Positions 28,858 to 50,448 are shown, counted from the first letter of the stretch. The stretch is 64,000 nucleotides of DNA from Macrostomum lignano (GCA_002269645.1 NIVC01000586.1:186001-250000), one strand, 5' to 3'. The notes: generated from the letters alone by a model not told the origin. A program made the numbers and translations.

Positions 28858-31800
28858 ATGGCCTGCGACCTGCTAATGCCATCATCGCAAGGCGGAGCCA
28901 ACAATCCAGCCTTCTCGCCGCTGACCCTGTTCGAGTGCACCATCACCAACGCACAGATGCTCATCGACTCCATGGCCGACCGGGACCTGATGCAGGCCCT
29001 GAAGATCGCCGGCGGCCTCCACACCCACATTGTCGGCGTCATCGAGCCGCGCTACGATCGCGTCTGTCAGCGTAGCGACGAGCACGAAGCCTGCTGCCAG
29101 GCGGCTGCCGCGGCTGCAACATCAGCAACGCTGACTCCTTCCAAGTCAGCTGGCGCCGCCAACTCGGCCAGTTTCGGAGCCAATGGCAGCGGCGCCGATT
29201 TGAAATCTGCCGTAGCTGCCGCCGCCGCCGCGGCCGGCCTGAAGTCCGAGTCTACCGGCTCTGTGGCAGCTGGCGGCGTCAAGTCCGAGCTGCTGGACCC
29301 TGACGCGTTCCCCGAGGAAGACGAAGAGGACTGTCTGATCCTGGAGGAGGACTGCTCCTTCCCCGCCGCTGCTGCCGCAATGTCGCCGTCGGCCTCCAGC
29401 TCCGCCAGCCGAAAGCGCCACCGCCCGTTGTCGCCCTCGTCAAGTCTGCAGATGCCGGGCGGAGCCAGCGCGGGTTTTCCTGGCAGCGCCCAGCAACTGG
29501 CCGAGTGCAAAAATGCGCTCAGGATGGCCTATAAAAATATTAAAGGCAACGGGCCGCACCTGTTTGACTTTGCGCTGTCGTGAGTTGCTCTGCAATTCTT
29601 GCATCCCTTGTAGAGGGATTCGGTGGGGTATGCGCGGGTGAGGGATTCAGTGGGGTATGAGCGGGTGAGGGATTCAGTGGGGTATGAGCGGGTGAGGGAT
29701 TCAGTGGGGTATGAGCGGGTGAGGGATTCAGTGGGGTATGAGCGGGTGAGGGATTCAGTGGGGTATGAGCGTGTGAGGGATTCAGTGGGGTATGAGCGTG
29801 TGAGGGATTCAGTGGGGTATGAGCGGGTGAGGGATTCAGTGGGGTATGAGCGTGTGAGGGATTCGGTGGGGTATGAGCGTGTGAGGGATTCAGTGGGGTA
29901 TGAGCAGCACAGTGAGGGATTCAGTGGGGTATGAGCGGGTGAGGGATTCAGTGGGGTATGAGCGGGTGAGGGATTCAGTGGGGTATGAGCGTGTGAGGGA
30001 TTCAGTGGGGTATGAGCGTGTGAGGGATTCAGTGGGGTATGAGCGTGTGAGGGATTCAGTGGGGTATGAGCGTGTGAGGGATTCAGTGGGGTATGAGCGT
30101 GTGAGGGATTCAGTGGGGTATGAGCGTGTGAGGGATTCAGTGGGGTATGAGCGGGTGAGGGATTCAGTGGGGTATGAGCGTGTGAGGGATTCAGTGGGGT
30201 ATGAGCGTGTGAGGGATTCAGTGGGGTATGAGCGTGTGAGGGATTCAGTGGGGTATGAGCGGGTGAGGGATTCAGTGGGGTTGGGTATGAGCGGGTGAAG
30301 GATTCAGTGGCGTATAAGCGTGTGAGGGATTCAGTGGGGTATGAGCGTGTGAGGGATTCAGTGGGGTATGAGCGTGTGAGGGATTCAGTGGGGTATGAGT
30401 GTGTGAGGGATTCAGTGGGGTATGAGCGTGTGAGGGATTCAGTGGGGTATGAGCGTGTGAGGGATTCAGTGGGGTATGAGCGGGTGAAGGATTCAGTGGC
30501 GTATAAGCGGGTGAGGGATTCAGTGGGGTATGAGCGGGTGAGGGATTCGGTGGGGTATGAGCGGGTGAGGAATTCGGTGGGGTATGAGCGGCACAGTGAG
30601 GGATCCATTGGGGTCTGAGCAGCACAATGAGGGATTCAGTGGGATATGAGCAGCACAGTGAAGGATTCAGTGGGATATGAGCAGCACAGTGAGGGATTCA
30701 GTGGGGTATGAGCAGCACAATGAGGGATTCAGTGGGGTATGAGCAACACAGTGAGGGATTCAGGGGTCTGAGCAGCACAGTGAGGGATTCAGTGGGGTAT
30801 GAGCAGCACAGTGAGGAATTCAGTGGGGTATGAGCAGCACAGTGAGGGATTCAGTGGGGTATGAGCAGCACAGTGAGGGATTCAGTGGGGTATAAGCAGC
30901 ACAGTGAGGGATTCAGTGGGGTATGAGCAGCACAGTGAGGGATTCAGTGGGGTATGAGCAGCACAGTGAGGGATTCAGTGGGGTGGTGAGGCAGTGCAAG
31001 AACCCAACCAATCGCATTACATTTCATTACAATTTCACCAACCAATCGCAACGCCGCCGCAGCTTCCACGACCCGTCCAATCAGAGAGTATCCGAGCAGA
31101 TTATCGCTACGGCCCGCCAGCAGCTGAGCCACCTGCGCCTGCCTAACGATGTCTGGTGGAGTGAGTTGGTTATTTAATAATTTAAACAAATGCATAAGTG
31201 ACTACTCGCAACCAGTTAAAGTAATAGCATTAGCAAATGTATTAAGTGAATATTGATGTCGGCCCTCTCCTTGCATTTGGTGACTTCGCACCGTGATCCA
31301 GTTTGATTGCCAGCTACAATAAGAGTTTTCATATCTTACCTGAGTATGGCTAGTAGCTAGTTTGTTTCCCATGGGACGGCAGCGCAACTGTCCCGTCATT
31401 AATTGATTCCGCCTCTATGAATTCATAATTAACTAATTATCTATGCTCTTCTTAACTGTTAGCAGTACAGTATGCATTTCAGTTTGTTGATTTTGCTTCC
31501 CACTACCTGAGGTGCAGGTTTTATTGGTTATTTAAACCGACTGCAGGGTCGCGTGCTGATTATTGATACAAGCTGTGCAATTAGTTGTACTTTTATTGCT
31601 GATCAGCTGCGTGCTGCCGTTCAACTGAAACTTTGTTTAGGCCAAGCCGGCAACCTGTGTAAGCGAATCAAAATCGAGCTGAACAATAACAAGCGGCGCA
31701 ATCGGCAGTTTCGCTGCAGGCAGAAGGTTGTTCTCCAACTGATTATTCTATTGGCTACCTAGCTAGCGAATCCCTACCAGCTGCAATGCTGAGCAGCCAG

Positions 31801-34800
31801 CCTCCCACATCCCCTAATGAGCCAGCCTCCCACATCCTTAATGAGCCAGTCTACCTCACCCCCTAATGAGCAGCCATCCTCCCACATCCCTAATGAACCA
31901 GTCTCCCTCACCCCCTAATAAGCAGCCAGCCTACCATATCCCCTAATGAGCCAGCCTCCCACATCCCTTAATGAGCAGCCAGCCTCCAACACCCCATAAT
32001 GAGCAGCCAGCCTCCCACACTCCCTAATGATCCAGCCTCCCACATCCCTTAATGAGCAGCCAGCCTCCCACACTCCATAATGAGCCAGCCTCCCACACCC
32101 CCTAATGAGCAGCCAGCCTCCCACACCCCCTAATGAGCAGCCAGCCTCCCACACCCCCTAATGAGCAGTCAGCCTCCCACACCCCCTAATGAGCAGCTAG
32201 CCTCCCACACTCCATAATGAGCCAGCCTCCCACACCCCCTAATGAGCAGCCAGCCTCCCACATCCCTAATGAGCAGCCATTGAGTCTTGTCTTCTTAGCT
32301 TAGTTTATTGTGGCAGTGATAACAATCGGGAAAAGTTCTCAATGCCCTTATGAAGTGAAGCGGATCAAACTGCGGTGAAGCGGTGAAGTCTCGGGCAGTT
32401 GCTTGCTCAGCTCCGACAGTCATACCGCAGAGCCAATCAAATGCGTTTTTTAGAATCGCTCAACAGCAGCGGCGTGTTCGGTCAGGCGAGGCACAATTAC
32501 TTAGCCAAATTTCGAATGCTTAAAATTAAACGGAAAAGCAACGTAGGTTTATTTGAGACTGTGTTCTCACTGAGCTGCGTGTGTCTGCAAACTCTGTTAG
32601 GTCATGGTTATAACTAGGGGGACAGGCAAATAAACTGACTTGCTGTGCCAGCGCTGTTAACCTGTAACCAAGTGTTAACCCGTAAACAGAGAAAGGCATG
32701 CCACTCGCCTTGCAGACAATAAAGCTGCTCGAGCATTTTATGCCGAGGAGAAAAATCGCGTGCTCACTCGAGTCCGAATGCGCCGCGTTGCCGGGCAGAA
32801 GTCTGTAAGGAGTCGCATCTGCCTTCCCTTCCCATCTTGTTTTTCTGAGTTGCAGTTTTGTCGCTTCTAATAGTTGCTTAATCAGCTGTTGCCACGGGCG
32901 TCTGGAGTTCCCGCTGGACTGGACTGGGGCGAGCATGGGGGGGGTAGTCAAATTGGGTATATATTCAAAAGGTGTTCATGACGACGCTCAAAGATCCCAG
33001 TGTCCAGTCCAGATAAGCTCCAGTGGTCCCTGGCCCATTCACCCATTGTTCATCCTGTTAATCGTTGTTATACGCTTTTATAAAAATTCGTAGCGATTCG
33101 GTGGCAAAGAGTTGGCCCATATCGACTAGAGTGCAGCTAGGCAGTATCTATGCAATAATAGCACACTGGATTGGACCGCTTACTGACCTTATTGCAGAGC
33201 ACTGCTTCCCCAGCGTGTACGATGAGTTAACCAAATATGACAAGCATAGGGAGCGAATGAAGCACAGAATGCGAGCTCGCAGGCTTATGAACAGCGTACG
33301 TATTATAAATAGCTATAACTATTTGGCAGTGCAAGCCTGCTTGTTTCATAAATCACTGCCTAATCACGCATCAAACGCAAGGTCCGCGGCTAACACTTCC
33401 CATGGTTTCTTAGCGCAATCTTAATCCTCTTTGGGGTTGGGGATTTCTTTTTAAACTGTTTCAGGCCTGTCCAGTGCTGCGTTTGCTGATCTGCAGCACA
33501 GCATATTGGAGAAGCGGCACTATACTAAGCATTCTGTGCGGAAATTCCGCAGCAAACTCAAGGTAAACACTGCCCTGGTCCGGATTGGGTCTTTGATATT
33601 AGCTTTTGCTTCTGCAGTCCAGTGTGTTCACCGTGTGTTCCGTGTTTGTTCTGGGCTATTAAAAGAGCAAGCTTTAATAGCCAAGATCTGGTCTGACAGT
33701 CGAATCCCACTGTCAAGTCCCAATCCCATAGTCAGAAGTCCCAATCCCGCAGTCAGAAGTCCCAATCCCATAGTCAGAAGTCCCAATCCCACAGTCAAAA
33801 GTCCCAATCTCACAGTGGGAAGTCACAATCTCACAGTCAGAAGTCACAATCTCACAGTCGTAAGTCACAATCCCACAGTCAAAAGTGACAATCCCACTGT
33901 CAGAAGTCTCAATCTCGCAGTCAGAAATCCCAATCCCGCACTCAGAAGTCCCAATCCCACAGTCAAAAGTCCCAATCTCACAGTGGGAAGTCACAATCTC
34001 ACAGTCAGAAGTCACAATCCCACAGTCGTAAGTCACAATCCCACAGTCAAAAGTAACAATCCCACTGTCAGAAGTCTCAATCTCGCAGTCAGAAATCCCA
34101 ATCCCGCACTCAGAAGTCCCAATCCCACAGTCAGAAGTCACAATCTCACAGTCGTAAGTCACAATCCCACAGTCAGAAGTCCCAATCTCACAGTGGGAAG
34201 TCCCAATCCCACAGTCAGAAGTCCCAATCTCACAGTCAGAAGTCCTAATCCCGCAGTTAGAAGTCCCAATCCCACATTCAAATCCCAAGCCCATAGTCAG
34301 AAGTCACAATCACACAGTCAGAAGTCACAATCACACAGTAGGAAATCACAATCCCGCAGTCAGAAGTCCCAATCACACAGTCGGAAATCACAATCCCGCA
34401 GTCAAAAGTCCTAGCCCTGCTAATTTCAAATTAATCTCTACTGACTAATCCCTATTAAATTTATTCTGATAAATTGATAGGTTGCATGCCTGTTGGAGGT
34501 GCATAGCAACCCGGTAACGATGGTAACAAATTTCACGCAGCATCAAAAGCAAGGCCCGGCCGCCCCAGTTTAGCCAGCTCCGTTAGAGATTGAATCCAGT
34601 GTTTCAGGACCGCCCGGCAGTAACACCTGCGCCGTGCGCTGCATTGCAGGCTGCGCTGAGGAATTGTGGCTGCTATTGAAGAAAGCTGTGGCGCACAAGC
34701 GCGAAAGAGACGTCTTCTATCAGCGCAAGGGGCGCCTGAAAAATAAAGTAAAACCATGCAGTCTATGCTCATTTGCTTACTTTTTCCACCGGGTTTTATC

Positions 34801-35603
34801 CTTTGTTGTGAATTAACCAATTGGGTCGGTAAGACGCATATAGGCTTTTAGGAAGTAAGTGCTAATCAGGGACTTTTCTGCTCTCATTTATACGACTGAC
34901 ATGATGCCTCATCTTTAAAATTGATTGGGCTGCGTGATATTACACCTCGCTGCCTCCCGATTTCCATCTCCCATTTCCAACCTCCATCTCCCCCTCCCAG
35001 CCTCCCTCTCTACCCCCTCCCAGCCTCTCTCTCTACCCCCTCCCAACCTCCCTCTATCTCCCGCTCCCAACCTCCATCTCTACCCCCCTCCGAACCTCCC
35101 TCTCCATCTCCTCTTTTCAATCTACCTTCATCTCCCCCTCCCGACCTCCCTCTCCATCTCCCTCTCCCGACCTACCTCTCCGTGTCCCACACGCCACATA
35201 CAGCTCCTGTTTTCTGACCCATCAGAAACTGGCCAGACGGCAGAAGAGCTTCGAACTGCTAGCAACCAGTTTATCCACCGACAAGTTCGACAAGTACCGC
35301 ATCATTTTGTCCCGGGACTACACTTCGTCTGACGAGGAAGCCGATGTTGGCAGCGGCGGTGCCAGCGCGAGCGGCGATGACGGAGGAGGCGGCGGAGGCG
35401 TCCTTCGAGTCCGCGAGCTGCCCTGGGAATCTGCGGAGCTGCGCGAGATGAAGCAGCAGCTGGACTCGATCTATCTGGAGAATTGCGCAACTCAGAAGCA
35501 GGCGCAGCAGTTGCGCAGCACAGTGCGCGACTCCGGCTGCGTCAGCGGCAGGACTCCACCTGCCAACTGCCCGTCCTGGGCGCTGTCTAATGAGTACCGC
35601 TAA
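28858..35603 (+). CDS. C14orf93/DUF4616-like putative DNA-binding protein, paralog A, with an array of alternative third exons
   Basis: Exons 28858-29579 (phase 2), 31063-31160 (phase 1), one variable exon, then 35226-35603; ~427 aa. Motifs AYKNIKGNGPHLFDFALSFHDPSNQRV, KLARR, YTSSDEE, VRELPWES..L...LD and P..PSWA resemble the C14orf93-like family (from memory; no search run). The exon structure is mirrored by paralog B. Confidence 0.8.
29600..30985. repeat. 27-bp minisatellite in gene A intron 1
   Basis: GGGATTCAGTGGGGTATGAGCGTGTGA. Confidence 0.97.
31259..31310 (+). promoter_or_regulatory. Candidate intronic docking region for the gene A exon cluster
   Basis: Partial complements lie upstream of the variable exons: 32364-32372 and 32381-32390; 32667-32675; 32944-32957 (14 nt, fully paired if G-U is allowed); 33369-33382; 34541-34554. 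Confidence 0.45.
31641..31726 (+). CDS. Gene A variable exon A1 (86 nt, phase 1-0): SQAGNLCKRIKIELNNNKRRNRQFRCRQK
   Basis: tttag acceptor, weak GTTGTT donor, open frame, basic helix. Confidence 0.65.
31790..32280. repeat. ~29-bp C-rich minisatellite between exons A1 and A2
   Basis: ctaatgagcagccagcctcccacacccc. Confidence 0.93.
32454..32542 (+). CDS. Gene A variable exon A2 (89 nt): KSLNSSGVFGQARHNYLAKFRMLKIKRKSN
   Basis: tttttag acceptor, GTAGGT donor, phase 1-0, no stop. Confidence 0.72.
32716..32804 (+). CDS. Gene A variable exon A3 (89 nt): NNKAARAFYAEEKNRVLTRVRMRRVAGQKS
   Basis: ccttgcag acceptor, GTAAGG donor, phase 1-0, no stop. Confidence 0.75.
33198..33295 (+). CDS. Gene A variable exon A4 (98 nt): KHCFPSVYDELTKYDKHRERMKHRMRARRLMNS
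   Basis: attgcag acceptor, GTACGT donor, phase 1-0, no stop. Confidence 0.72.
33465..33562 (+). CDS. Gene A variable exon A5 (98 nt): SLSSAAFADLQHSILEKRHYTKHSVRKFRSKLK
   Basis: gtttcag acceptor, GTAAAC donor, phase 1-0, no stop. Confidence 0.72.
33715..34410. repeat. 21-bp minisatellite between exons A5 and A6
   Basis: cacagtcagaagtcccaatcc. Confidence 0.93.
34650..34747 (+). CDS. Gene A variable exon A6 (98 nt): SCAEELWLLLKKAVAHKRERDVFYQRKGRLKNK
   Basis: attgcag acceptor, GTAAAA donor, phase 1-0, no stop. Confidence 0.7.
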
Positions 35604-35749
35604 TGCTTGCCAGACTGATTAGGTGGCGAGCTGGTTGATTCGCGAACTATAGGGTTACTCGCGCCGTTTACCCAACTAACTGACGAATTTAGGGCCAACC
35701 ATTCTTTACTGCAATTGTTTCTGACACCCAGTTTTGTTCGTGTTCTCTT

Positions 35750-36020
35750 CCATCCATGGGATACCCGCCACACCTGGTCTCTCCCATCCATGGGATACCG
35801 CCACACCTGGTCTCCCCCATCCATGGGATACCGCCACACCTGGTTTCCCCCAGCCATGGGGTACCCGGCACACCTGGTCTCTCCCATCCATGGGGTACCC
35901 GCCACACCTGGTTTCCCCCAGCCATGGGGTACCCGGCACACCTGGTCTCTCCCATCCATGGGGTACCCGGCACACCTGGTCTCTCACATCCATGGGGAAC
36001 CCGGCACACCTGGTCTCTCA
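35750..36020. repeat. ~33-bp minisatellite downstream of gene A
   Basis: ccatggggtacccggcacacctggtctctcccat-type units. Confidence 0.9.
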
Positions 36021-36609
36021 CATCGAGTTCGTCATGCTGTCAATGTTGACTTTTCGAATCAAAATTTGAATAGCTCTCCAATGCTGGCACAGAGGCTCCA
36101 TGCGATTTCAATACCTGGGGAAAAGTATTTGCTGCATTTAAGCTTCAATATTTGCACTGCGAGTAGTTGCGCAATGCGTCTCTTATCTATAATATTTTAC
36201 TTGTTGCTGCTATCCCAGTCAGTAAATATTATTGCAATTAGCGAACTTTCATAAACCCCACATTGTCACATGTCTCTGTTCACTTGTTAATCTGTAATAA
36301 GTTTGCCTGTATTCTGTTTTCATGTGTTTATTATTTTTTGCTGTTGTTTAACTGCCCCCAGTCATTTCCGCAGCTTTGCTTTTGCGTTAACACACTGTCT
36401 CGTTCTGTACATGCTATAAAATACGATAATTACATAACAATATGATAATAATTAATTTATTTGCTAAAGAATTTTTCATTCTTTTTCAGTTGTTGCCGAT
36501 TAATTATCGGAAAATGCAGTTGTATTACTGTTCTGAAGCTTTGCTCATGTAGTGAAATAGACCAGGCTTTATTATTATAGCATAGTGTAATTCATAGTGC
36601 ATGTTTAGT

Positions 36610-37275
36610 TCCTGGGATTCCCCTCCAGCACCCATCCCCCTGACTGCCTACCCCACAGCGTACATTGAATGTCTGGGATTCCCCTCCAGCACCCACCCCT
36701 CACTGCCTACCCCACTGCGTACATTGAGGGCCTGAGATTCCCCTCCAGCACCCACCCCTCACTGCCTACTCCACTGCGTACATTGAGTGTCTGAGATCCC
36801 CCTCAAGCACCCACCCCTCACTGCCTACCCCACTGCGTACATTGAATGTCTGGAATTCCTCTCCAGCACCCACCCCTCACTGCCTACCCCACTGCGTACA
36901 TTTAATGTCTGGAATTCCTCTCCAGCACCCACCCCTCACTGCCTACCCCACTGCGTACATTGAATGTCTGGAATTCCTCTCCAGCACCCACCCCTCACTG
37001 CCTACCCCACTGCGTACATTAAATGTCTGGAATTCCTCTCCAGCACCCACCCCTCACTGCCTACCCCACTGCGTACATTGAATGTCTGGAATTCCTCTCC
37101 AGCACCCACCCCTCACTGCCTACCCCACTGCGTACATTGAATGTCTGGAATTCCTCTCCAGCACCCACCCCTCACTGCCTACCCCACTGCGTACATTAAA
37201 TGTCTGGAATTCCTCTCCAGCACCCACCCCTCACTGCCTAACCCACTGCGTACATTAAATGTCTGGGATTCCCTT
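36610..37275. repeat. 59-bp minisatellite upstream of gene B
   Basis: aatgtctggaattcctctccagcacccacccctcactgcctaccccactgcgtacatt units. Confidence 0.93.
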
Positions 37276-37335
37276 CTAGCGCAATGAGTCAAGTCTGCAA
37301 TTACGCTTTTGCATGTAGCCTTTCACCACCAAACA

Positions 37336-40300
37336 ATGACGGACATTCTGCCTAGCCACTCCATCACCGGGGGCGTTTTTTCACCCCTGACCCTGTTCGA
37401 GTCCACCATCACCAACGCGCAGATGCTGGTGGAGTCCATGGCCGAGCGGGAGCTGTTCTCCGCCCTGCGCATCATCGGCGGCCTGCACAGCCACGTTGTC
37501 CAGGTCATGGAGCCGCGCTACGGCCGCCTGTGTGAGCGCAGCGACCACCTCGCCGAGCTGGAGGCTGCCGGCCTGGATCAAAGCCACGGCTCCGCTGCCG
37601 AGGCTGCCGAAGCCACTTCATCCTCGTCGGCTGCTGCCGCTTCTAGCAGACGCTTCGCTAAGGAGGAGAAACTGCTAGGCGACACCGACACGGAGCAGCA
37701 GTGCACCTCCGTGCTGCGCTCCGCCCTTGGCACCATCAAGGTATTTCCTATTCACCGCGTTGTGATGTCGGCGCCTTTCCTATTATATTTGATGTCGCGG
37801 ACTTTCCCATCTCCTCTGATGTCGCCGACTTTCCCATCTCCTCTGATGTCGCCGACTTTCCCATCTCTGATGTCGCCGCCTTTCCCATCTTTTTTTATGT
37901 CGCCGCCTTTCCCCACTCCTTTGATGTCGCCGCCTTTCCCCACTCCTTTGATGTCGCCGCCTTTCCCGTCTCTTTGATGTCGCCGTCATTCTCTTCTCTT
38001 CTCTTCTGGTGCTCAACAGATGGAGAACTTTGACGCGGCCGGCGCTTCCGCCCTGCCATCCGCCGCTAACGCAAACTTCGGCGAACAGCTGGAGCCGCCG
38101 GAGATCTTGGAAGAGGACGCCGATGATGAAGACGAGGATGACGATTGCGTCATCACCGACTACTTCGACGACAGCAGCTTTGGCGCTAGCGGCATCGGCG
38201 CCTTCGGTGGCGTCGGCCCGTCGCCCGCCAAAATGCCGCGACTCGGCGGGGTCGGCGGCGGCGCAGGCGACAGCTCGATGCCGGCCGAGTGCAAGACCAT
38301 CATGCGCCGGGCTTACAAAGCTCTCAAGGGCAACGGGCCGCATCTGTTTGACTTCAGCCTGCCGTGAGTCTCCTTAGCTGGCACGCCGGTTACCAGTCCC
38401 GGCCTCAGTCTGGAAACGCCTCTAGAAATCTTCGACTTTACATCAGCCAAAATGCAAACCCTGGTTAGGCTACCCTGAACAAACCCTGAGCCACCCCTGA
38501 ACAAACCCTGAGCCACCCCTGAACTCAAGTCTGAGCCATTCCCTGAACTCAACCCTGAGCCACCCCTTGAACTCAACCCTGAGCCACCCCCTGAACTTAA
38601 CCCTGAGCCACCCCCTGAGCTCAATCCTGAGCCACCCCCTGAACTCAACTCTGAGCCACCCCCTGAACTCAACTCTGAGCCACCCCCTGAACTCAACTCT
38701 GAGCCACCCCCTGAACTCAAATCTGAGCCACCCCCTGAACTCAACTCTGAGCCACCCCCTGATCTCAACCCTGAGCCAGCCCCTGAACTCAACCCTGAGC
38801 CACCCTTGAACTCAACCCTGAGCCAGCCCTGATCTCTGTGGACTCAAGAGCGCCGCCTCCCCCACCGCCGGCCCCACAGCTTCTCTTCGGAGCACAACCA
38901 GCGAGTTGCCACCCGCGTCACCGCCAAAGCCAAGGAGATGGCCCAGGGCAAGGGCTGGCCCGAGGACATTTGGCTGAGTGAGAAACAGTGCCGCTTTTTG
39001 TGCATTTAGATATAAAGTTTGATAAGTTGATAAATGATGTGTAGAATACAACTCTTAATTAAGATTACACTGCGTATGAAGTAGTTAATAGAATAGATTA
39101 ATCGTAAAATCTTATCTTAGTTATATTCTATTAATACTACTCGCACAGACTAGCCAAGTAGTATCTATAGGCTGCGCTAATTTGCTAATTTTACCTGCCC
39201 TCAAGTCTGGAAACGTCGCAAGTAATTTGGGTACAAGAAATATTTAATAACTAATTTTAATCTCCTTTCAACTTGGGCTGCTTCTAATAGGTTCATGTCT
39301 GACTATTTGAGACACAATCAGAGACTTAATTATGCATTAATTATCTAATTAATTATTTGCATTATTTCTATTGCCGAACTGCCTACAGTTAGCAGGTGGT
39401 AAAGCGATGTAATGCTACTGAGACTGTTGCCTATTCGACGTTTCTTATTGGCCATTTAGAATGAGTTTTGAATAAAGCTGAACTGCTCAACTCACACTTA
39501 GAACTGCCCTACGGCTCAAGGCTAGTCTACCTGTACCTGGATTTTCGGCAAAAGATGAGGTTTAAGCATCGATGCGTTGTAAGCTTTGCTGGTCATCTCT
39601 GTTTCTATCGGTTTTTTGTGTCACACCAGCCTCCACTGTCCTGCTTGCGATGTTCGCCCAGACTCGCGTCTTTATAACAGGCTTTGCTCAAAACAGTTTT
39701 GCCAATATGTTTCTGGCCTCCAATTTGCCCAGGGCTGCCCAAAGAGTCCAGAGTAAATCGGATTCACTGCACCTATGGAGCCCGTCTGCGCGCCAAGCAC
39801 AGGCAGATTGTGAGTTCCCTCCCCCTGTGCCCTCCCCTGTACCTTGATGAGCCGCCTCTCCCCCTGTGCCTTTGATGAGCCGCCTCTCCCCTTGTGCCTT
39901 TGATAAGCCGCCTCCCTCCCCCTGTGCCTTTGATAAGCCGCCTCCCTCCCCCTGAGCCTTTGATGAGCCGCCTCTCCCCATGTGCCTTTGATCAGCCGCC
40001 TCTGCCCCTGTGCCTTTGATGAGCGGCCTCCCTTCCCCTGAGCCTTTGATAAGCCGCCTCTCCCCTGAGCCTTTGATGAGCCGCCTCTCCCCTTGTGCCT
40101 TTGATAAGCCGCCTCCCTCCCCTGAGCCTTTGATAAGCCGCCTCTCCCCTTGTGCCTTTGATAAGCCGCCTCCCTCCCCCTGAGCCTTTGATGAGCCGCC
40201 TCTCCCCCATGTGCCTTTGATCAGCCGCCTCTGCCCCTGTGCCTTTGATGAGCGGCCTCCCTTCCCCTGAGCCTTTGATAAGCCGCCTCTCCCCTGAGCC

Positions 40301-43300
40301 TTTGATGAGCCGCCTCTCCCCTTGTGCCTTTGATAAGCCGCCTCCCTCCCCCTGTGCCTTTGATAAGCCGCCTCCCTCCCCCTGAGCCTTTGATGAGCCG
40401 CCTCTCCCCACGTGCCTTTGATCAGCCGCCTCTGCCCCTGTGCCTTTGATGAGCGGCCTCCCTTCCCCTGAGCCTTTGATAAGCCGCCTCTCCCCTGAGC
40501 CTTTGATGAACCGCCTCTCCCCTTGTGCCTTTGATAAGCCGCCTCCCTCCCCTGTGCCTTTGATAAGCCGCCTCCCTCCCCCTGAGCCTTTGATGAGCCG
40601 CCTCTCCCCCATGTGCCTTTGATCAGCCGCCTCTGCCCCTGTGCCTTTGATGAGCGGCCTCCCTTCCCCTGAGCCTTTGATAAGCCGCCTCTCCCCTGAG
40701 CCTTTGATGAGCCGCCTCTCCCCTTGTGCCTTTGATAAGCCGCCTCCCTCCCCCTGTGCCTTTGATAAGCCGCCTCTCCCCTTGTGCCTTTGATAAGCCG
40801 CCTCCCTCCCCCTGAGCCTTTGATAAGCCGCCTCTCCCCTTGTGCCTTTGATGAGCCGCCTCTCCCCTTGTGCCTTTGATAAGCCGCCTCCCTCCCCTGA
40901 GCCTTTGATAAGCCGCCTCTCCCCTTGTGCCTTTGATCAGCCGCCTCTCCCCCTGTGCCTTTGATAAGCCGCCTCCCTCCCCCCTGAGCCTTTGATGTCC
41001 GCCTGTCTTTGCGCTGGGTTAAGCAAGTCAGTGATAAATAAGTCTACAATTTTACAATCAATTCGACGTTTCCCGTCTGGACAGTTGGCTAAAAACTCTC
41101 GCCTATAAGTGCACCCAGAGTCTGAGGCGATTTTCCCGCAGGACTGCCGAAAGTCGGCCGCCTGTCCGAGATTTTCTTTGTTTTCAGAAGTCAAATCCGA
41201 AACAAGCTGCGACTCGTTGTACGCAATTGTCACAGTTCCGCACTTTCTCTGTTGTGTTGGGAATTTTTCTGTCAAAAATTTTCTACGATGCATATCGGCG
41301 TTTCCTGACTAAAGTTGAGCAGATTTGGCTTTGCGTAGCAAATTTCTACCAAAGTCGCTATCGTCTACTCACGCCAGTCAGTAGTGTATTGAGGAGTGCT
41401 CGGCTCACTTTTTACATCTATTTTTAGATCTGCCTTCCAGCGGCAAAATCAGGAAGATGTTCACCGATTTTAGGCAGAAGATGCGCGCTAGGCTGGTGCT
41501 TGGCGTGCGTGCCCGATTTTCTCTGTTTAGGTTTTTATTTAATTTTTTGACGTTTCCCGGCTGCCTGTAAGCTCACTGCTGTGTGAGGCTTGTGCTTGCT
41601 AACACTTGACCTGACTGCCCCGCTGTTGCAGGGCTGCCACACACCGGCCGGCCGACCGCCATATTCAACGATTTTAGAAAGAAAATGCGCACCAGGTTTC
41701 GAATGGATGTTAGTGATAATTGCTTTAGGTGTTTCTATGGGGCTCTGCGAATTCCGCTTCAGTGCTGAGACGTTTCCCGACAATGGCCGGGTGCTGCAAT
41801 TGTGCGAACCCCCCTGTGTCCGTCACGCCACCGACTGCCGCTTGCAGATCTGCCGCCCAAGGCCCGCCTGCTCGCCATTTTTGGCGACTTTAAAAAGAAA
41901 AGGCGATTCAAGTCCCGCTCTGATGTCAGTGCAGCTGGGTGGCTTTTCGCCTCATCTGTGTTGTCTGTTTTCCCCCATTTTTGCTTGCACTGCCTTGGCT
42001 GGGTAGGCAGGGTAGCTAGATTGGTAGACAGACAAATTGATTGATTGACAGACAGGCAGGCAGGCAAACAAACACTAAGATAGGCAAACAGACAGACACA
42101 GATACGCTAGCAGACCAACGCAATTGCGCGGTGCACCGTGGGGGGGGGGTGAGGCTGTACATTGCTGGCACTGTTGGGCCAGCCGCCCTTACTCGCTGTA
42201 ACTTATCGCTCAGCCTGTTACAATGCCAGACGCAATGCCAGACGTTTCCTGACAACTCAGACTGTGAATTGTACAGCACACAGAATTGCCAGCAAACAGT
42301 TCCCCATCGCGCGCGTTGCAGAGCTGCCCATGAACAGCCGATTGATCTGCATATTCGCCGACTTTAGAAAGAAGATGCGCAACAGATTTCGTTCAGATGT
42401 TGGTCCGGGTTCAAAACTCGATTTCAGAGCTTTCAGGCTGCGATATGAAAATATTTGTTACATGCTATTGGAACTACTGTACTGACTGCTGATCAGTAGT
42501 CAATGCCATCATGATGTGAAAAATGTTTTCCTCTCTGATTTGCTTCTGTTTAAACTGTACTGAGCTGTCGAAAAGCCACTGCATGACCTGAGCTATGACT
42601 GAAAAGCCACTGCATGACCTGATCTATGACTGAAAAGCCACTGCATGACCTGATCTATGACTGAAAAGCCACTGCATGACCTGATCTATGACTGAAAAGC
42701 CACTGCATGAGATCTGAGCTATGACTGAAAAGCCACTGCATGAGATCTGAGCTATGACTGAAAAGCCACCACTCTATGACCTGAGCTATGACTGAAAAGC
42801 CACCACTCTATGACCTGAGCTATGACTGAAAAGCCACCACTCTATGACATGAGCTGTGACTGAAAAGCCACCACTCTATGACCTGAGCTATGACTGAAAA
42901 GCCACTGTATGAAGGCTATGACTGAAATGAATCTCAAAGCAGCCAGCTCTCGCAGTCTTGCCTCGCTTCCCCCGAACTTGCAGAAGCTGAACCGCCGTCA
43001 GAAAAGTTTCGAACTCGTGGCCACCAGCCTGACCTCTGACGAGCTGGAGAAGTTCCGCGTGATCCTCACCAGGGAGTACACCAGCTCGGATGAGGAGTGC
43101 GGCTCCGGCGGCGCCGACCAGCTGCGGGTCCGCGAGCTGTCCTGGGAGTCCGACGAGGTGAAGCGGCTGAAGCGGCAGCTGGACCAGGTGTACGCGGACA
43201 ACTGCGCCACCACCAAGCAGAAGCAGCAGCTGGCCAGGTGCATCCGCGACCCCGTCCGATCGCGGTCGCAGCGGCCGCCGCCCGAGGCTGCGCCAAGCTG

Positions 43301-43373
43301 GGCTTTGAAGGCGCCGCTGCAGAAGAACCGGCCGGGAGACGGCGCTCCGCCGCCCGCCTCCGGCACCGCCTGA
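37336..43373 (+). CDS. C14orf93/DUF4616-like putative DNA-binding protein, paralog B, with seven alternative 77-nt exons
   Basis: Exons 37336-37740, 38020-38363, 38880-38977 (98 nt, same length as in gene A), one 77-nt variable exon, then 42984-43373; ~437 aa. Shares FSPLTLFE-TITNAQML, KGNGPHLFDF, KL-RRQKSFEL, YTSSDEE, LRVREL-WES and PSWAL with gene A. Confidence 0.82.
37780..37990. repeat. ~27-bp minisatellite filling gene B intron 1
   Basis: tgatgtcgccgcctttccc units. Confidence 0.88.
38470..38830. repeat. 24-bp minisatellite in gene B intron 2
   Basis: gagccaccccctgaactcaactct. Confidence 0.92.
39205..39222 (+). promoter_or_regulatory. Docking site GTCTGGAAACGTCGCAAG for the gene B mutually exclusive exon cluster
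   Basis: Its reverse complement (CTTGCGACGTTTCCAGAC) is partly matched upstream of all seven variable exons: 39436-39444, 39644-39663, 41064-41073, 41296-41309, 41549-41557, 41767-41781, 42241-42253. Confidence 0.75.
39502..39578 (+). CDS. Gene B variable exon B1 (77 nt): KLPYGSRLVYLYLDFRQKMRFKHRCV
   Basis: cttag acceptor, GTAAGC donor, phase 1-0. Confidence 0.82.
39733..39809 (+). CDS. Gene B variable exon B2 (77 nt): RLPKESRVNRIHCTYGARLRAKHRQI
   Basis: cccag acceptor, GTGAGT donor, phase 1-0. Confidence 0.8.
39830..40995. repeat. ~28-30-bp minisatellite between exons B2 and B3
   Basis: gcctttgataagccgcctctccccttgt variants. Confidence 0.95.
41142..41218 (+). CDS. Gene B variable exon B3 (77 nt): RLPKVGRLSEIFFVFRSQIRNKLRLV
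   Basis: ttttcccgcag acceptor, GTACGC donor, phase 1-0. Confidence 0.8.
41428..41504 (+). CDS. Gene B variable exon B4 (77 nt): NLPSSGKIRKMFTDFRQKMRARLVLG
   Basis: tttttag acceptor, GTGCGT donor, phase 1-0. Confidence 0.82.
41632..41708 (+). CDS. Gene B variable exon B5 (77 nt): RLPHTGRPTAIFNDFRKKMRTRFRMD
   Basis: gttgcag acceptor, GTTAGT donor, phase 1-0. Confidence 0.82.
41848..41924 (+). CDS. Gene B variable exon B6 (77 nt): NLPPKARLLAIFGDFKKKRRFKSRSD
   Basis: cttgcag acceptor, GTCAGT donor, phase 1-0. Confidence 0.82.
42322..42398 (+). CDS. Gene B variable exon B7 (77 nt): KLPMNSRLICIFADFRKKMRNRFRSD
   Basis: gttgcag acceptor, GTTGGT donor, phase 1-0. Confidence 0.82.
42570..42925. repeat. 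~30-bp minisatellite before the last exon of gene B
   Basis: ctatgactgaaaagccactgcatgacctgag. Confidence 0.92.
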
Positions 43374-47625: not shown

Positions 47626-48991
47626 GAAATTGTCATCAGGTGTTTATGGCTTCACGCGCAGTAACTGATAATTAAAAGCAAACCTTCCCTGTTTCATTCT
47701 CACCTGCAAATATCTGGTAAATGGAAAGTGTGAGGCTTCTGTTATCGCTAATTGTACCTACCTCATATAGTCAAAGCTTCCATTCAGATAATATTAGATT
47801 TTGGCACACCACACGCAGGTAACACTGGCAGGTGGCAGGTCCGGACCCGATCCGATCTTTGTTGCGGCCTCCGCCGCTGCGGCCATCGTCCGTCAGCTGC
47901 TGATGATGCCGAGCCTGCCAGCCGGATTCTGGGGTCACGTGACAGGCTGATGCTGAAAATTGGCTGGTAGAGGCGACGGGCCAGCAGCATGGAACTGAAG
48001 TTTTTCTTGCAGCGAGCCGCAGAATTTAATCGATGCTCAAACCGCACTACTGTCTTAAGTAGAGTAGCCAGCTTCCTCTTAAAAAAATTTTCTTCTATAA
48101 AACAAAAATCCGGTATGTATCGAAAAGATAGTAAGCCTGTCTTTTCAAAAAATGCTTAAATTTTTTACCGCTATTTCTGTGCAGTCCATTTTCTGAAATC
48201 TGAAATAAAGCCCAACTATATCAGATATTTACAGTGCTCTGTGTACTTTAAGTGTTCTTTGGCTATCAACGTTGCAAAAATAAAGCTTATCCAGAGCTAT
48301 TATTTACTAAAAATGTTAATCTTTTATAAAATAAATACGCAGCTTTTCAGATTTTATAGTTAAAAAGGCACACAGACAGACAGAAAAACAGTCAGTCAGA
48401 AAGAGAGACACTGGGACATTAAAAGACTGGGGGCATTAAGAGACTGGAGCATCAAGACACAGAGACATTAAGACACTGAGACATTTAAGACACTGATACA
48501 TTTAGACACTAGGAAATTTAAGACAATGAGACATTTAAGACAATGGGACATTAATTAGACACTGGGACATTAAGACACTGGGACATTAAGACACTGGGAC
48601 ATTAAGACACTGGGAAATAAGGACACTAAGACATAAAGAAACTGGGACATTTAAGACAATGGAACATTTATTAAAAACTGGGACATTTAAGACACTGGGA
48701 CATTTAAGACAATGGGACATTAATTAGACACTGGGACATTTAGGACAATGGAACATTAATTAAAAACTGGGACATTTATGACAATGGGACTTTAGCGACT
48801 CGCAAAATGAAATGGCGCGAGAGAAAGTAAACTTTTATTTTTCACAATCGCATATAAATACTGCGCGACAGAGAGGCATGGGGAGGTGCGCATAGTCCGT
48901 GCCAGACCCTGCGGCTTAGCGCGCCGGCCGTCTGGGTGCACCCACCCCCCGGGCAGGGTGAGTCAGGCCGATTGAGTGCAGGTGCACTGCC

Positions 48992-49777
48992 GGCCAGGCG
49001 GGCCGAGAAGTCCTGGATGTGCGGCACTGGGTAGCGGTCGGGCACCGTGGCGTCGTTGAGCCGCCTGAAGTCGCCGCAGGGCCGCCACCCGCCCGAGGCC
49101 TTGGGCACCATGTGCAGCGGCGAGGACCACGGGCTGTTGGACCGGCGCGCGATGCCGAGCTGCTCCAGGAGCCGGAACTCCTCCTTGGCCACCGCCAGCT
49201 TGTCCGGCGGCAGGCGGCGAGGGCGGGCGTGGACCGGCGGGCCCTGAGTCGGGATGTGGTGCTCGACCCCGTGGCGCGGCTCCGCTCGCTGGAAGCTGGG
49301 CTCGGTGAGGGCGGGGAACTCGGCCAGCAGCTGGCTGTACGGGTCCGCAGCGGCGGCTGCGGCGAGCTGCAGTCCGGGCCCCGTGCCGTCCAGCAGGTGC
49401 ACGCTGGCGAATGAGCGGGCGTCCAGGAGTCGCCGGTGCGGCAGATCCACCAGCAAGCCGTGGTGTCGCAGGAAGTCGGCGCCGATCAGCGGGCGGGAGA
49501 CCTCGGCCAGGATGAACGGCCACGAGCAGCGCCGGATTCCGAGGTCGAGCGTGAGCTGGCGGGTGCCGAAGGTGCGAATGAGGCTGCCGTTGGCTGCAAA
49601 GAGCGGCGGGCCGGGCGTGTGCAGGCGAGCATCCGAGCCATCGACGGGGAAAATGCTGACCTCGGCGCCGGTGTCGACCAGGAAGCGCCGGCCCGTCTGC
49701 ACATCGGGGATGAGGAGCAGGCTGCTGCTGTTGCCGGCCGCCGAGCTGTTCACTGACGGCCGGCCTGCCCGTTTCCC
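48992..49777 (-). pseudogene. pol: Gypsy pol 5' fragment (aspartic protease plus N-terminal RT), reached by a -1 frameshift; truncated
   Basis: [10 protein letters not shown] protease; [25 protein letters not shown] start; slippery heptamer GGGAAAC at 49771-49777; fused directly to LTR sequence at ~48991. Confidence 0.9.
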
Positions 49778-50448
49778 TGGAAGCTGCATGGAGATTCGCA
49801 GCGGCGTGCCTTGGCTCCGAAACGGCGATGGAAGTAGCACAGGCCGTCGTCAGGGTGATGTTGTTGCTGCTTAGACGGCCGACTGCCGCCCCGACGGGTC
49901 GCCGAAACCACCGGCTGGGTGGGCTCCGCTGCCGGCTGCTGGACGGAGGCCGCGGCGAGCTGCGGCCGGCTGGCCCACAGCTTGTCGGCGAGCTGCGCTG
50001 CTTCCCGCGGGTCGCTGAAGTCGGCGGTCGCCATTGCCATTCTGACCTCAGCGGGCAGCTGCTGGCGGAACAACTCTTCGAAGAGCAGGCAGGGCCGGTG
50101 GTCGCCAAGCAGGGCGAGCATCTCGTCCATCAACTCCGTGGGACGCCTGTCGCCGAGGCCGGACATGTTGAGCAGGCGGCTGGCCCGCTGTTGTCGGGAC
50201 AGCTCGAAGGTGCCGAGCAGTCGCTCCTTCAGCCTCTTGTACTTTTCTTCCCTCGGCGGATTCTCCAGCGCGTCGATGAGCCGCTCGGCGGTCTGCTGAT
50301 CGAGCGCCGCGATGACGTGGCTGTACTTCGTGTCGTCATCGGAGATCTTCCGCAGAGCGAATTGAGCTTCGGCCTGAACAAACCAAATACGAGGTTGAGA
50401 TGCCCAAAACGTGGGCAGTTTGAGTGCAACGGCTGACTCCGTAGTCAT
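49750..50448 (-). CDS. gag: Gypsy gag (capsid-like)
   Basis: [21 protein letters not shown]...[11 protein letters not shown]...[16 protein letters not shown], with a C-terminal CYFH..FG..AR.C..PC zinc-knuckle-like motif. Confidence 0.9.

Follow-up and report, generated by a model that had tools for sequence, protein, structure and literature searches.

Tandem arrays of interchangeable helix-encoding exons and a predicted docking/selector system in paralogous genes of the flatworm Macrostomum lignano

Two tandem genes with arrays of short basic exons

We analyzed a 64,000-nucleotide (nt) stretch of the genome of the free-living flatworm Macrostomum lignano (NIVC01000586.1:186001-250000; hereinafter, the window, with positions counted from its first nucleotide), which carries two tandem paralogous genes on the plus strand, each with an array of short alternative exons located between constant exon B and the last coding exon (Table 1). 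A protein search with a spliced product yielded 15 matches, every one from M. lignano. Among the annotated gene models, P0001 (BOX15_Mlig032950g2) is a partial model of gene 2, to which it is 100% identical, and P0014 (BOX15_Mlig028241g1) is identical to the start of gene 1. The exon junctions read AYKNIKGNGPHLFDFAL-S-FHDPSNQRVSEQII in gene 1 and AYKALKGNGPHLFDFSL-P-FSSEHNQRVATRV in gene 2, and the last exons encode the conserved motifs KLARRQKSF...YTSSDEE...LPWESAEL...QLD...PSWAL and KLNRRQKSF...YTSSDEE...LSWESDEV...QLD...PSWAL, respectively.

Table 1. Coding exons, variable exons (v) and predicted RNA pairing elements of the two genes; L005 and L007 are further M. lignano loci
Feature	Position	Strand	Length (nt)	Sequence or product	Remarks
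Gene 1 first coding exon	28858..29579	+		FSPLTLFECT N-terminal domain, low-complexity stretch, ...AYKNIKGNGPHLFDFAL + 2 nt of Ser codon	donor TC/GTGAGT; matches P0014
Gene 1 constant exon B	31063..31160	+		FHDPSNQRVSEQIIATARQQLSHLRLPNDVWW + 1 nt	phase 1 end; donor GTGAGT
Gene 1 v1	31641..31726	+	86	SQAGNLCKRIKIELNNNKRRNRQFRCRQK	weak donor gttgtt, alternative donor 31729; inside P0014; weak orthologue L005 11978-12063
Gene 1 v2	32454..32542	+	89	KSLNSSGVFGQARHNYLAKFRMLKIKRKSN	
Gene 1 v3	32716..32804	+	89	NNKAARAFYAEEKNRVLTRVRMRRVAGQKS	
Gene 1 v4	33198..33295	+	98	KHCFPSVYDELTKYDKHRERMKHRMRARRLMNS	
Gene 1 v5	33465..33562	+	98	SLSSAAFADLQHSILEKRHYTKHSVRKFRSKLK	
Gene 1 v6	34650..34747	+	98	SCAEELWLLLKKAVAHKRERDVFYQRKGRLKNK	
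Gene 1 last coding exon	35226..35603	+		KLARRQKSFELL...YTSSDEE...LRVRELPWES...PSWALSNEYR, stop	
Gene 2 coding exon 1	37336..37740	+		MTDILPSH..FSPLTLFEST...GTIK	P0001 100% identical
Gene 2 coding exon 2	38020..38363	+		MENFDAAG...AYKALKGNGPHLFDFSL + 2 nt	donor CC/GTGAGT
Gene 2 constant exon B	38880..38977	+		FSSEHNQRVATRVTAKAKEMAQGKGWPEDIWL + 1 nt	phase 1 end
Docking site (predicted)	39207..39223	+	17	CTGGAAACGTCGCAAGT	intron after gene 2 exon B; identical in L005 and L007
v1 selector (predicted)	39434..39445	+		TTCGACGTTTCT	complementary to docking site; 56 nt upstream of v1
Gene 2 v1	39502..39578	+	77	KLPYGSRLVYLYLDFRQKMRFKHRCV	orthologues L005 27421, L007 16142
v2 selector (predicted)	39641..39654	+		CTGCTTGCGATGTT	13 contiguous pairs, including G-U, with 3' half of docking site
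Gene 2 v2	39733..39809	+	77	RLPKESRVNRIHCTYGARLRAKHRQI	orthologues L005 27666 (used in P0004), L007 16410
v3 selector (predicted)	41064..41075	+		CGACGTTTCCCG	
Gene 2 v3	41142..41218	+	77	RLPKVGRLSEIFFVFRSQIRNKLRLV	
v4 selector (predicted)	41296..41310	+		CGGCGTTTCCTGACT	
Gene 2 v4	41428..41504	+	77	NLPSSGKIRKMFTDFRQKMRARLVLG	in gene model P0002
v5 selector (predicted)	41548..41562	+		TGACGTTTCCCGGCT	
Gene 2 v5	41632..41708	+	77	RLPHTGRPTAIFNDFRKKMRTRFRMD	in gene model P0002
v6 selector (predicted)	41769..41781	+		GACGTTTCCCGAC	
Gene 2 v6	41848..41924	+	77	NLPPKARLLAIFGDFKKKRRFKSRSD	
v7 selector (predicted)	42241..42253	+		GACGTTTCCTGAC	
Gene 2 v7	42322..42398	+	77	KLPMNSRLICIFADFRKKMRNRFRSD	
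Gene 2 last coding exon	42984..43373	+		KLNRRQKSFELV...YTSSDEE...LRVRELSWES...PSWALKAP..., stop	

Reading frame and the predicted inclusion of a single variable exon

In both genes, exon B ends in phase 1, that is, after one codon base (donor GTGAGT or GTGAGA), and the last exon begins in phase 0, so that any intervening exon has to measure 3n+2 nt and to be free of stops in one given frame. A systematic scan for AG...GT segments with the required open frame and a high content of lysine and arginine identified exactly 6 basic candidates in gene 1, of 86, 89, 89, 98, 98 and 98 nt, and exactly 7 in gene 2, each of exactly 77 nt. An earlier note on this DNA had proposed 13 interchangeable exons combined with constant ones; the scan arrives at the same number, and all the peptide motifs cited in that note are present in the two genes. 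The arrays consist of tandem, in-phase exons of similar length with AG/GT boundaries, the features by which mutually exclusive exon clusters are recognized. The gene 1 array contains 4 strictly defined in-phase basic AG..GT open reading frames (ORFs) in 4 kb, compared to 0-3 per frame and strand in 48 kb of the sequence outside it. The gene 2 variable exons share 40-70% pairwise DNA identity, and the 77 nt flanking them on either side are at the random level (18-40%, ungapped).

All 13 mRNAs that include a single variable exon give intact ORFs of 427-437 residues. Exon skipping shifts the frame and leads to a stop within ~20 codons of the last exon, and double inclusion (77 + 77 nt) causes a frameshift as well; with v5 as the second exon, the sequence meets a stop at codon 3 of the last exon, and gene model P0003 contains v5 in precisely this out-of-frame reading. 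Given that each copy is 3n+2 nt long, skipping or double inclusion destroys the frame of the conserved C-terminal half of the protein. We infer that exactly one variable exon is present in each mature mRNA.

The complete models of paralogues (P0004, P0005, P0007, P0009, P0011, P0012 and P0015/P0019) include one variable exon apiece, and one gene is represented by two models, P0015 and P0019, whose sole difference is the variable exon chosen. Among the models of the two genes in the window (P0014, P0001, P0002 and P0003; 28858-31760 and 37309-39010), two read on into the intron after v1 or exon B and then stop, and several of the UniProt names that the models bear (Exocyst subunit, Sec8, Rab-GAP and others) are evidently spurious. 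As the models break off or lose the frame at the array, the annotation needs repair.

Paralogous arrays and selection on the variable exons

We compared the window with three further M. lignano loci, L005, L006 and L007. Two of these, L005 (10001-29395) and L007 (1206-18047), likewise contain a gene-1-like gene in tandem with a gene-2-like one. A genome duplication is known in M. lignano, and the repeated tandem pairs fit it. At L006 (10001-23246), two family genes of a more distant type lie side by side. The gene-2-type array comprises at least 10 exons of exactly 77 nt at L005, a locus that ends before the last exon, and 5 at L007, and the gene-1-like and more distant paralogues contain 1, 2, 3 and 3 candidate exons; the number of variable exons varies widely across the gene copies, being 1, 2, 3, 3, 5, 6, 7 and at least 10.

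Across the three gene-2-type loci, there are zero indels among the 22 exons of 77 nt, and the flanks cannot be aligned. The exons at L005 and L007 follow the same xLP...R..IF..F+...+.+.+ pattern as those of gene 2. The positions kept among the 22 exons are L2, P3, R7, I/L8, I/L/M11, F12, F15, R/K16, R20, K/R22 and R/K24, and positions 4, 5, 9, 10, 13, 14, 17, 21, 25 and 26 are highly variable. The proportion of nonsynonymous differences (pN) was below that of synonymous differences (pS) in all 10 exon pairs tested, and the ratio of the corresponding rates (dN/dS) was 0.13-0.74 in the 8 pairs with a computable dS; in the remaining two, dS was saturated. The differences cluster at third codon positions in several pairs, L5_v1/v2 and W_v2/L5_v7 among them; W_v5/W_v7 is without such a bias. 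Selection on the gene 2-type variable exons is evident in these alignments. The v1 and v2 exons have cross-locus orthologues, and gene 2 v3-v7 as well as L005 v1-v3 are local duplicates, so the arrays evolve by birth and death of exons.

A predicted docking site and its selectors

In the 150 nt preceding the variable exons, a k-mer enrichment analysis detected GACGTTTCC for 4 of the 7 gene 2 exons and its 8-mer core GACGTTTC for 5 of the 7, and related words were also present in L005 and L007. The reverse complement of this selector word occurs once per gene in gene 2, L005 and L007, in the intron just after exon B. The 17-nt core of this putative docking site, CTGGAAACGTCGCAAGT, is unique within the 64-kb stretch, and is invariant among the three paralogues, standing as an island within introns that have diverged elsewhere. 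With at most one mismatch, CGACGTTTCC occurs 7 times in the window (both strands) vs 1.39 expected, a count that was not attained in any of 100 shuffles. Every one of these matches falls within the gene 2 array: the docking site accounts for the one on the minus strand (39209-39218), and the other six, all plus-strand, precede v1 and v3-v7 by 56-117 nt.

Alignment of 19 selectors gives the consensus TTGCGACGTTTCCAG, which is reverse-complementary to the docking site, and the contiguous complementarity amounts to 9-13 bp in gene 2, to 8-16 bp at L005 and to 5-17 bp at L007, with the selectors located ~55-120 nt upstream of their exons. Convincing selectors were identified for every one of the 7 gene 2 exons and, over the three loci, for about 18 of 22. 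Complementarity was judged by strict contiguous runs together with k-mer enrichment, and counts of pairs with at most one mismatch, for which the null is inflated, were left aside; RNAduplex, applied to the introns in full, was uninformative, giving long duplexes that were riddled with loops and scored poorly (z-scores). Because all the selectors overlap on one docking site, only one of them would be paired at a time.

The docking motif recurs once more, in the imperfect form AGTCTGGAAACGCC, at 38407-38420, in the gene 2 intron between the exon encoding LFDFSLP and exon B; L005 and L007 have no counterpart at that place. This additional copy might be a relic, a decoy or a balancer element.

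The introns of both genes are packed with minisatellites, the large ones spanning 29613-30984, 33703-34411, 36612-37272, 39832-41004 and 42570-42927. Among these, the 1.2-kb array at 39832-41004, with a 201/430-nt period, separates v2 from v3 and the v3 selector, and an array of 34-mers lies immediately 5' of the last exon of gene 2. The minisatellites stretch the distance separating the docking site from the selectors of v3-v7 to ~2-3 kb. Elsewhere in the window (48842-50448, minus strand), overlapping long ORFs with an aspartic protease motif and a stretch resembling reverse transcriptase look like a fragment of a long terminal repeat (LTR)-type retrotransposon split across several reading frames.

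A metazoan protein family remotely related to C14orf93

Pfam scans of single-exon ORFs, spliced proteins, paralogues and 31 invertebrate members of the family detected no meaningful domain. A profile of the C-terminal half finds relatives beyond flatworms: an exhaustive HMMER search retrieved 966 representative proteins at the threshold E<=1e-3, with 335 still matching at E<=1e-10; many span the whole 205-position profile. The named members come from the starfish Patiria, the brachiopod Lingula, the mussel Potamilus, the amphioxus Branchiostoma and the acorn worm Ptychodera, and are labeled "uncharacterized" or "hypothetical".

The assignment of this domain to the C14orf93/DUF4616 family, made in the earlier note, stands in part. 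In hmmscan searches (E<=10 or E<=1) of the spliced proteins, 7 paralogues and the 31 invertebrate members, no match to PF15394 was detected; all the retrieved C14orf93 proteins carry this domain. In profile-profile comparison with hhalign, a 53-sequence domain alignment headed by a gene 2 paralogue matched that of 16 C14orf93 proteins with 95.45% probability (E 1.6e-8) over 174 columns, collinearly from the first helix to the terminal S.R.P motif, and the alignment of the 31 invertebrate members gave 95.06% (E 3.4e-8) over 179 columns; a small, mostly Macrostomum profile alone reached 4.6%. Because the hhalign match comes without a Pfam match, "C14orf93-like" is right as a statement of remote homology and not of Pfam family membership. 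By this profile evidence, the C-terminal domain is a remote homologue of C14orf93/DUF4616.

The likeness to C14orf93 (RTFC, 4931414P19Rik) is collinear over ~175 columns and encompasses the N..V helix, the YF..+R basic helix, KL.RR, the acidic SDEE cluster, L.W/F....L..LD and S.R.P. The N-terminal halves are unlike, and the exon array of the Macrostomum genes is not known for C14orf93. A role in thyroid differentiation has been reported for C14orf93/RTFC (PMC5322522). The mouse protein contains predicted bipartite nuclear localization signals (NLSs), is nuclear but also secreted, and is reported to be a microglia chemoattractant; the properties described for it are nuclear localization and secretion rather than DNA binding, and InterPro and HHpred provided no functional clue (PMC10163356).

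The exon boundaries around the helix exon are the same in Lingula (L008, 14079-14213) and Ptychodera (L009, 14773-14883), where this exon is present in a single copy; the separate helix exon encodes AACRVYYRSLRDD... or ACLRYFKSKRDD..., and the last exon begins with KLSRR or KRWRR. Given these intron positions shared with a brachiopod and a hemichordate, the exon structure is ancient and the duplication lineage-specific: within the range of these comparisons, the exon array is a Macrostomum innovation on an ancient exon.

All Macrostomum paralogues share the N-terminal motif FSPLTLFE[CS]TITNAQML..SMA.R(D/E)L...L+I (28915-29080 and 37381-37545), which might be a dimerisation module; in non-flatworm phyla, a coiled-coil region stands in its place. 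Among the non-flatworm homologues, one is located 5 kb from a Harbinger-type transposase with THAP and DDE_Tnp_4 (L004, 3400-5100), and another adjoins a Transposase_21 gene (L009, 1-9541). The Lingula gene is multi-exonic and lies amid ordinary host genes. The association with transposases being inconsistent, a transposon origin of the family was dropped.

Structure of the swapped segment

AlphaFold2 models were built from family alignments on the paralogues P0004 and P0009. For the gene-2-type domain (P0004, 78% identical to gene 2), the mean predicted local distance difference test score (pLDDT) was 91.1 and the predicted template modeling score (pTM) was 0.75. The variable exon of P0004 (residues 62-87) encodes a loop with a pLDDT of ~68, followed by the first 20 residues of a helix that spans residues 68-102 and continues into KLNRRQKSFELVA. 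In the model of the gene-1-type domain (P0009; pLDDT 90.8, pTM 0.78), the 33-residue variable exon lies wholly inside a helix spanning residues 57-109. Thus, in both gene types, the models place the variable exon in a long helix, in agreement with the previous suggestion that it encodes the basic helix just before KLxRR.

Within this helix, the basic residues occupy conserved positions and the variable positions lie between them, with a basic stripe at i, i+4 and i+8 that is kept in the exons and runs on into KLxRRQK. The kept hydrophobic positions presumably pack on the domain. Judging from the periodicity of the sequence, the swap would replace one, exposed face of the helix. Basic residues conserved as a stripe, with variable positions next to them, would suit a nucleic-acid-binding helix of variable specificity and, equally, a partner-binding stalk or, in part, an import signal.

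Interpretation and alternatives

We consider it probable that the two genes produce 13 proteins (7 + 6) which share one scaffold and differ in a swapped helix face, and that, in gene 2, the exon is chosen by RNA pairing. Under the mechanism that we propose, the small exon that, in most animals checked, encodes the start of the long basic helix of the C-terminal domain would have been tandemly duplicated in Macrostomum, giving gene 1 its 6 copies, gene 2 its 7 and the paralogues examined from 1 to at least 10. Exactly one copy would be spliced in, as enforced through the frame by the 3n+2 length. In gene 2 and its two closest paralogues, the copy would be chosen by competing RNA base pairing with the single docking site: as in the model for Dscam exon 6, docking-selector pairing would loop out the upstream copies and activate the exon behind the paired selector. 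The resulting 13 proteins would have the same scaffold and differ in one helix face, with the hydrophobic and basic positions kept.

Several observations weigh against this interpretation. A convincing selector is lacking for 4 of the 22 exons in the three gene-2-type loci. The docking site is invariant among the three paralogues and, because it never varies, compensatory covariation is absent; formally, CTGGAAACGTCGCAAGT might be a protein-binding motif instead of an RNA docking site. In gene 1 and its paralogues, the search for a docking/selector system yielded nothing above noise. This search covered 10-12-mers shared by three gene-1-type paralogues, k-mer enrichment adjacent to the exons, and 8-9-mer complementarity including G-U pairs in four docking/selector geometries, and the same complementarity test, applied as a positive control, recovered the gene 2 system; in gene 1 and its paralogues, the frame rule would be the only evident safeguard. 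The gene 1 exons vary in length and are barely alignable with one another, so that the use of all six is less certain. Finally, the models P0001 and P0014 end at the array, and P0002 and P0003 join two variable exons out of frame; being truncated or out of frame, these models neither prove nor disprove exclusivity.

With regard to function, we infer that the swapped face changes what the domain binds. Our best guess for the ligand, a tentative one, is nucleic acid or a chromatin partner in the nucleus.

An alternative that is possible but on balance doubtful is that the swapped helix is a protein-protein interface, such as a stalk for dimerisation or partner selection, or else a nuclear import signal, and that the isoforms differ in partners or localization. 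The position of the gene-1-type exon inside a single helix of 53 residues is typical of stalks and coiled coils, and the conserved hydrophobic positions 8, 11, 12, 15, 19 and 23 show heptad-like spacing. The pTM values of 0.75-0.78, however, point to a helix that is packed in one compact domain rather than protruding freely. An import signal would be compatible with the basic clusters of mouse C14orf93, which are predicted bipartite NLSs in a protein that is both nuclear and secreted (PMC10163356), but a plain NLS requires neither helical periodicity nor strict length nor metazoan-wide conservation.

DNA recognition by the swapped helix is a reasonable guess. The basic stripe (positions 16, 20, 22 and 24, running into KLNRRQK) with variable positions between the basic ones is the pattern expected for constant phosphate contacts combined with varying base contacts, the mouse homologue is nuclear with predicted NLS-like basic stretches (PMC10163356), and other family members contain an N-terminal coiled coil, as do many dimeric DNA binders. 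The more specific claim of the earlier note, that the domain adopts a Myb/SANT-like DNA-binding fold in which the swapped exon is the recognition helix, such that the 13 isoforms read 13 DNA sequences, for example, those of minisatellites or transposons, seems unlikely. Myb, SANT and MADF profiles had no Pfam match in the more than 40 members scanned, and a sequence profile search of PDB retrieved no relevant match. Foldseek searches with the two confident models found no similar fold in PDB (best E 4.5 and 3.0, TM < 0.3), with no helix-turn-helix, Myb, SANT or homeodomain chain among the matches listed, and nothing among the viral models. Given that neither profiles nor PDB folds matched, "Myb/SANT-like" is not supported. 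Furthermore, the swapped segment belongs to a helix of 35-53 residues that is continuous with the part encoded by the next exon, unlike the short third helix of a three-helix bundle, and the link to minisatellite recognition is pure speculation. In a broader and, in our estimate, improbable scenario, an expansion confined to flatworms would have turned an ancient nuclear domain that human C14orf93 also possesses into a diversified recognition system, in which a Dscam-like and possibly stochastic RNA-pairing switch selects one recognition helix for each transcript and several paralogous genes together supply dozens of proteins with differing nucleic acid (DNA or RNA) specificities serving, for example, repeat or transposon surveillance.

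Very little probability remains for the view that most variable exons are decaying duplicates in a repeat-prone genome, with one functional exon per gene and an array without a role: it could draw on the rampant local duplication that follows from introns full of minisatellites, on the ~30% chance that a 25-codon frame is open, on the presence, in the gene 2 region, of five open but spurious AG..GT segments of 77 nt, on some weak donors (gttggt, gttgtt) and on the poorly alignable gene 1 exons, but it is opposed by the exact, indel-free 77-nt length of all 22 exons from three diverged paralogues with randomized flanks, by pN < pS in every pair tested and the third-position bias in several of them (W_v5/W_v7 excepted), by the scaffold residues conserved in every copy, by the separate selector of each copy at a constrained distance, and by the use of differing copies in the models P0003, P0002, P0004, P0005, P0015 and P0019.

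Implications and comparison with known systems

In the literature searched, we found no report of a docking/selector system or of these exon clusters in flatworms. We regard the docking/selector architecture predicted in three paralogous flatworm genes as the most solid new result of this work. The gene 2 array, with 7 exons in 3.5 kb and an invariant 17-nt docking site, is a compact flatworm example of such a system. M. lignano is open to transgenesis, which makes the RNA-competition model testable in a second, independent system, and the paralogues with 1, 2, 3, 5, 6, 7 and at least 10 copies open the origin of such systems by tandem exon duplication to study. At the protein level, a large unannotated metazoan family (966 representative clusters) is now linked to human C14orf93/RTFC, and one helix is singled out as a functionally important, diversifiable surface.

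In Drosophila lola and mod(mdg4), the analogues named in the earlier note, many alternative modules are joined to one constant N-terminal part, which yields related nuclear proteins. There, whole C-terminal domains are swapped through alternative 3' exons or trans-splicing, whereas, in Macrostomum, the exchanged unit would be an internal piece of a helix, of 26-33 residues, in a single domain, encoded by mutually exclusive cassette exons. In srp, the exon swap alters part of a DNA-binding transcription factor. As predicted for gene 2, the insect genes 14-3-3zeta, Mhc, MRP1 and srp contain small clusters of duplicated exons that are chosen by competing RNA structures (PMC6071210). However, in 14-3-3zeta, Mhc and MRP1, the docking site is located downstream of the cluster (PMC6071210), whereas in gene 2, it is upstream, as in Dscam exon 6.

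In Dscam exon 6, to which the Graveley model applies, the docking site is downstream of the constitutive exon and the selectors are upstream of each variant (PMC6071210). As far as can be judged from sequence, the gene 2-type layout is the Dscam exon 6 architecture. As described there, Drosophila Dscam1 shares with gene 2 the tandem alternative exons of similar length, the one conserved docking site after the preceding constitutive exon, and the upstream selectors of the individual variants, which are complementary to overlapping parts of the docking site, where just one of them could pair at a time. The two systems differ in size, with 48 exons in Dscam1 exon 6 vs 5 to at least 10 in the Macrostomum gene-2-type loci, and in the encoded product, an arthropod cell-surface receptor in one case and an intracellular, probably nuclear, flatworm protein in the other. 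Finally, the variants of Dscam exon 6 keep the frame, whereas the Macrostomum exons are 3n+2 nt long, so that frame incompatibility would provide a second safeguard in addition to the competition among selectors for a single docking site.

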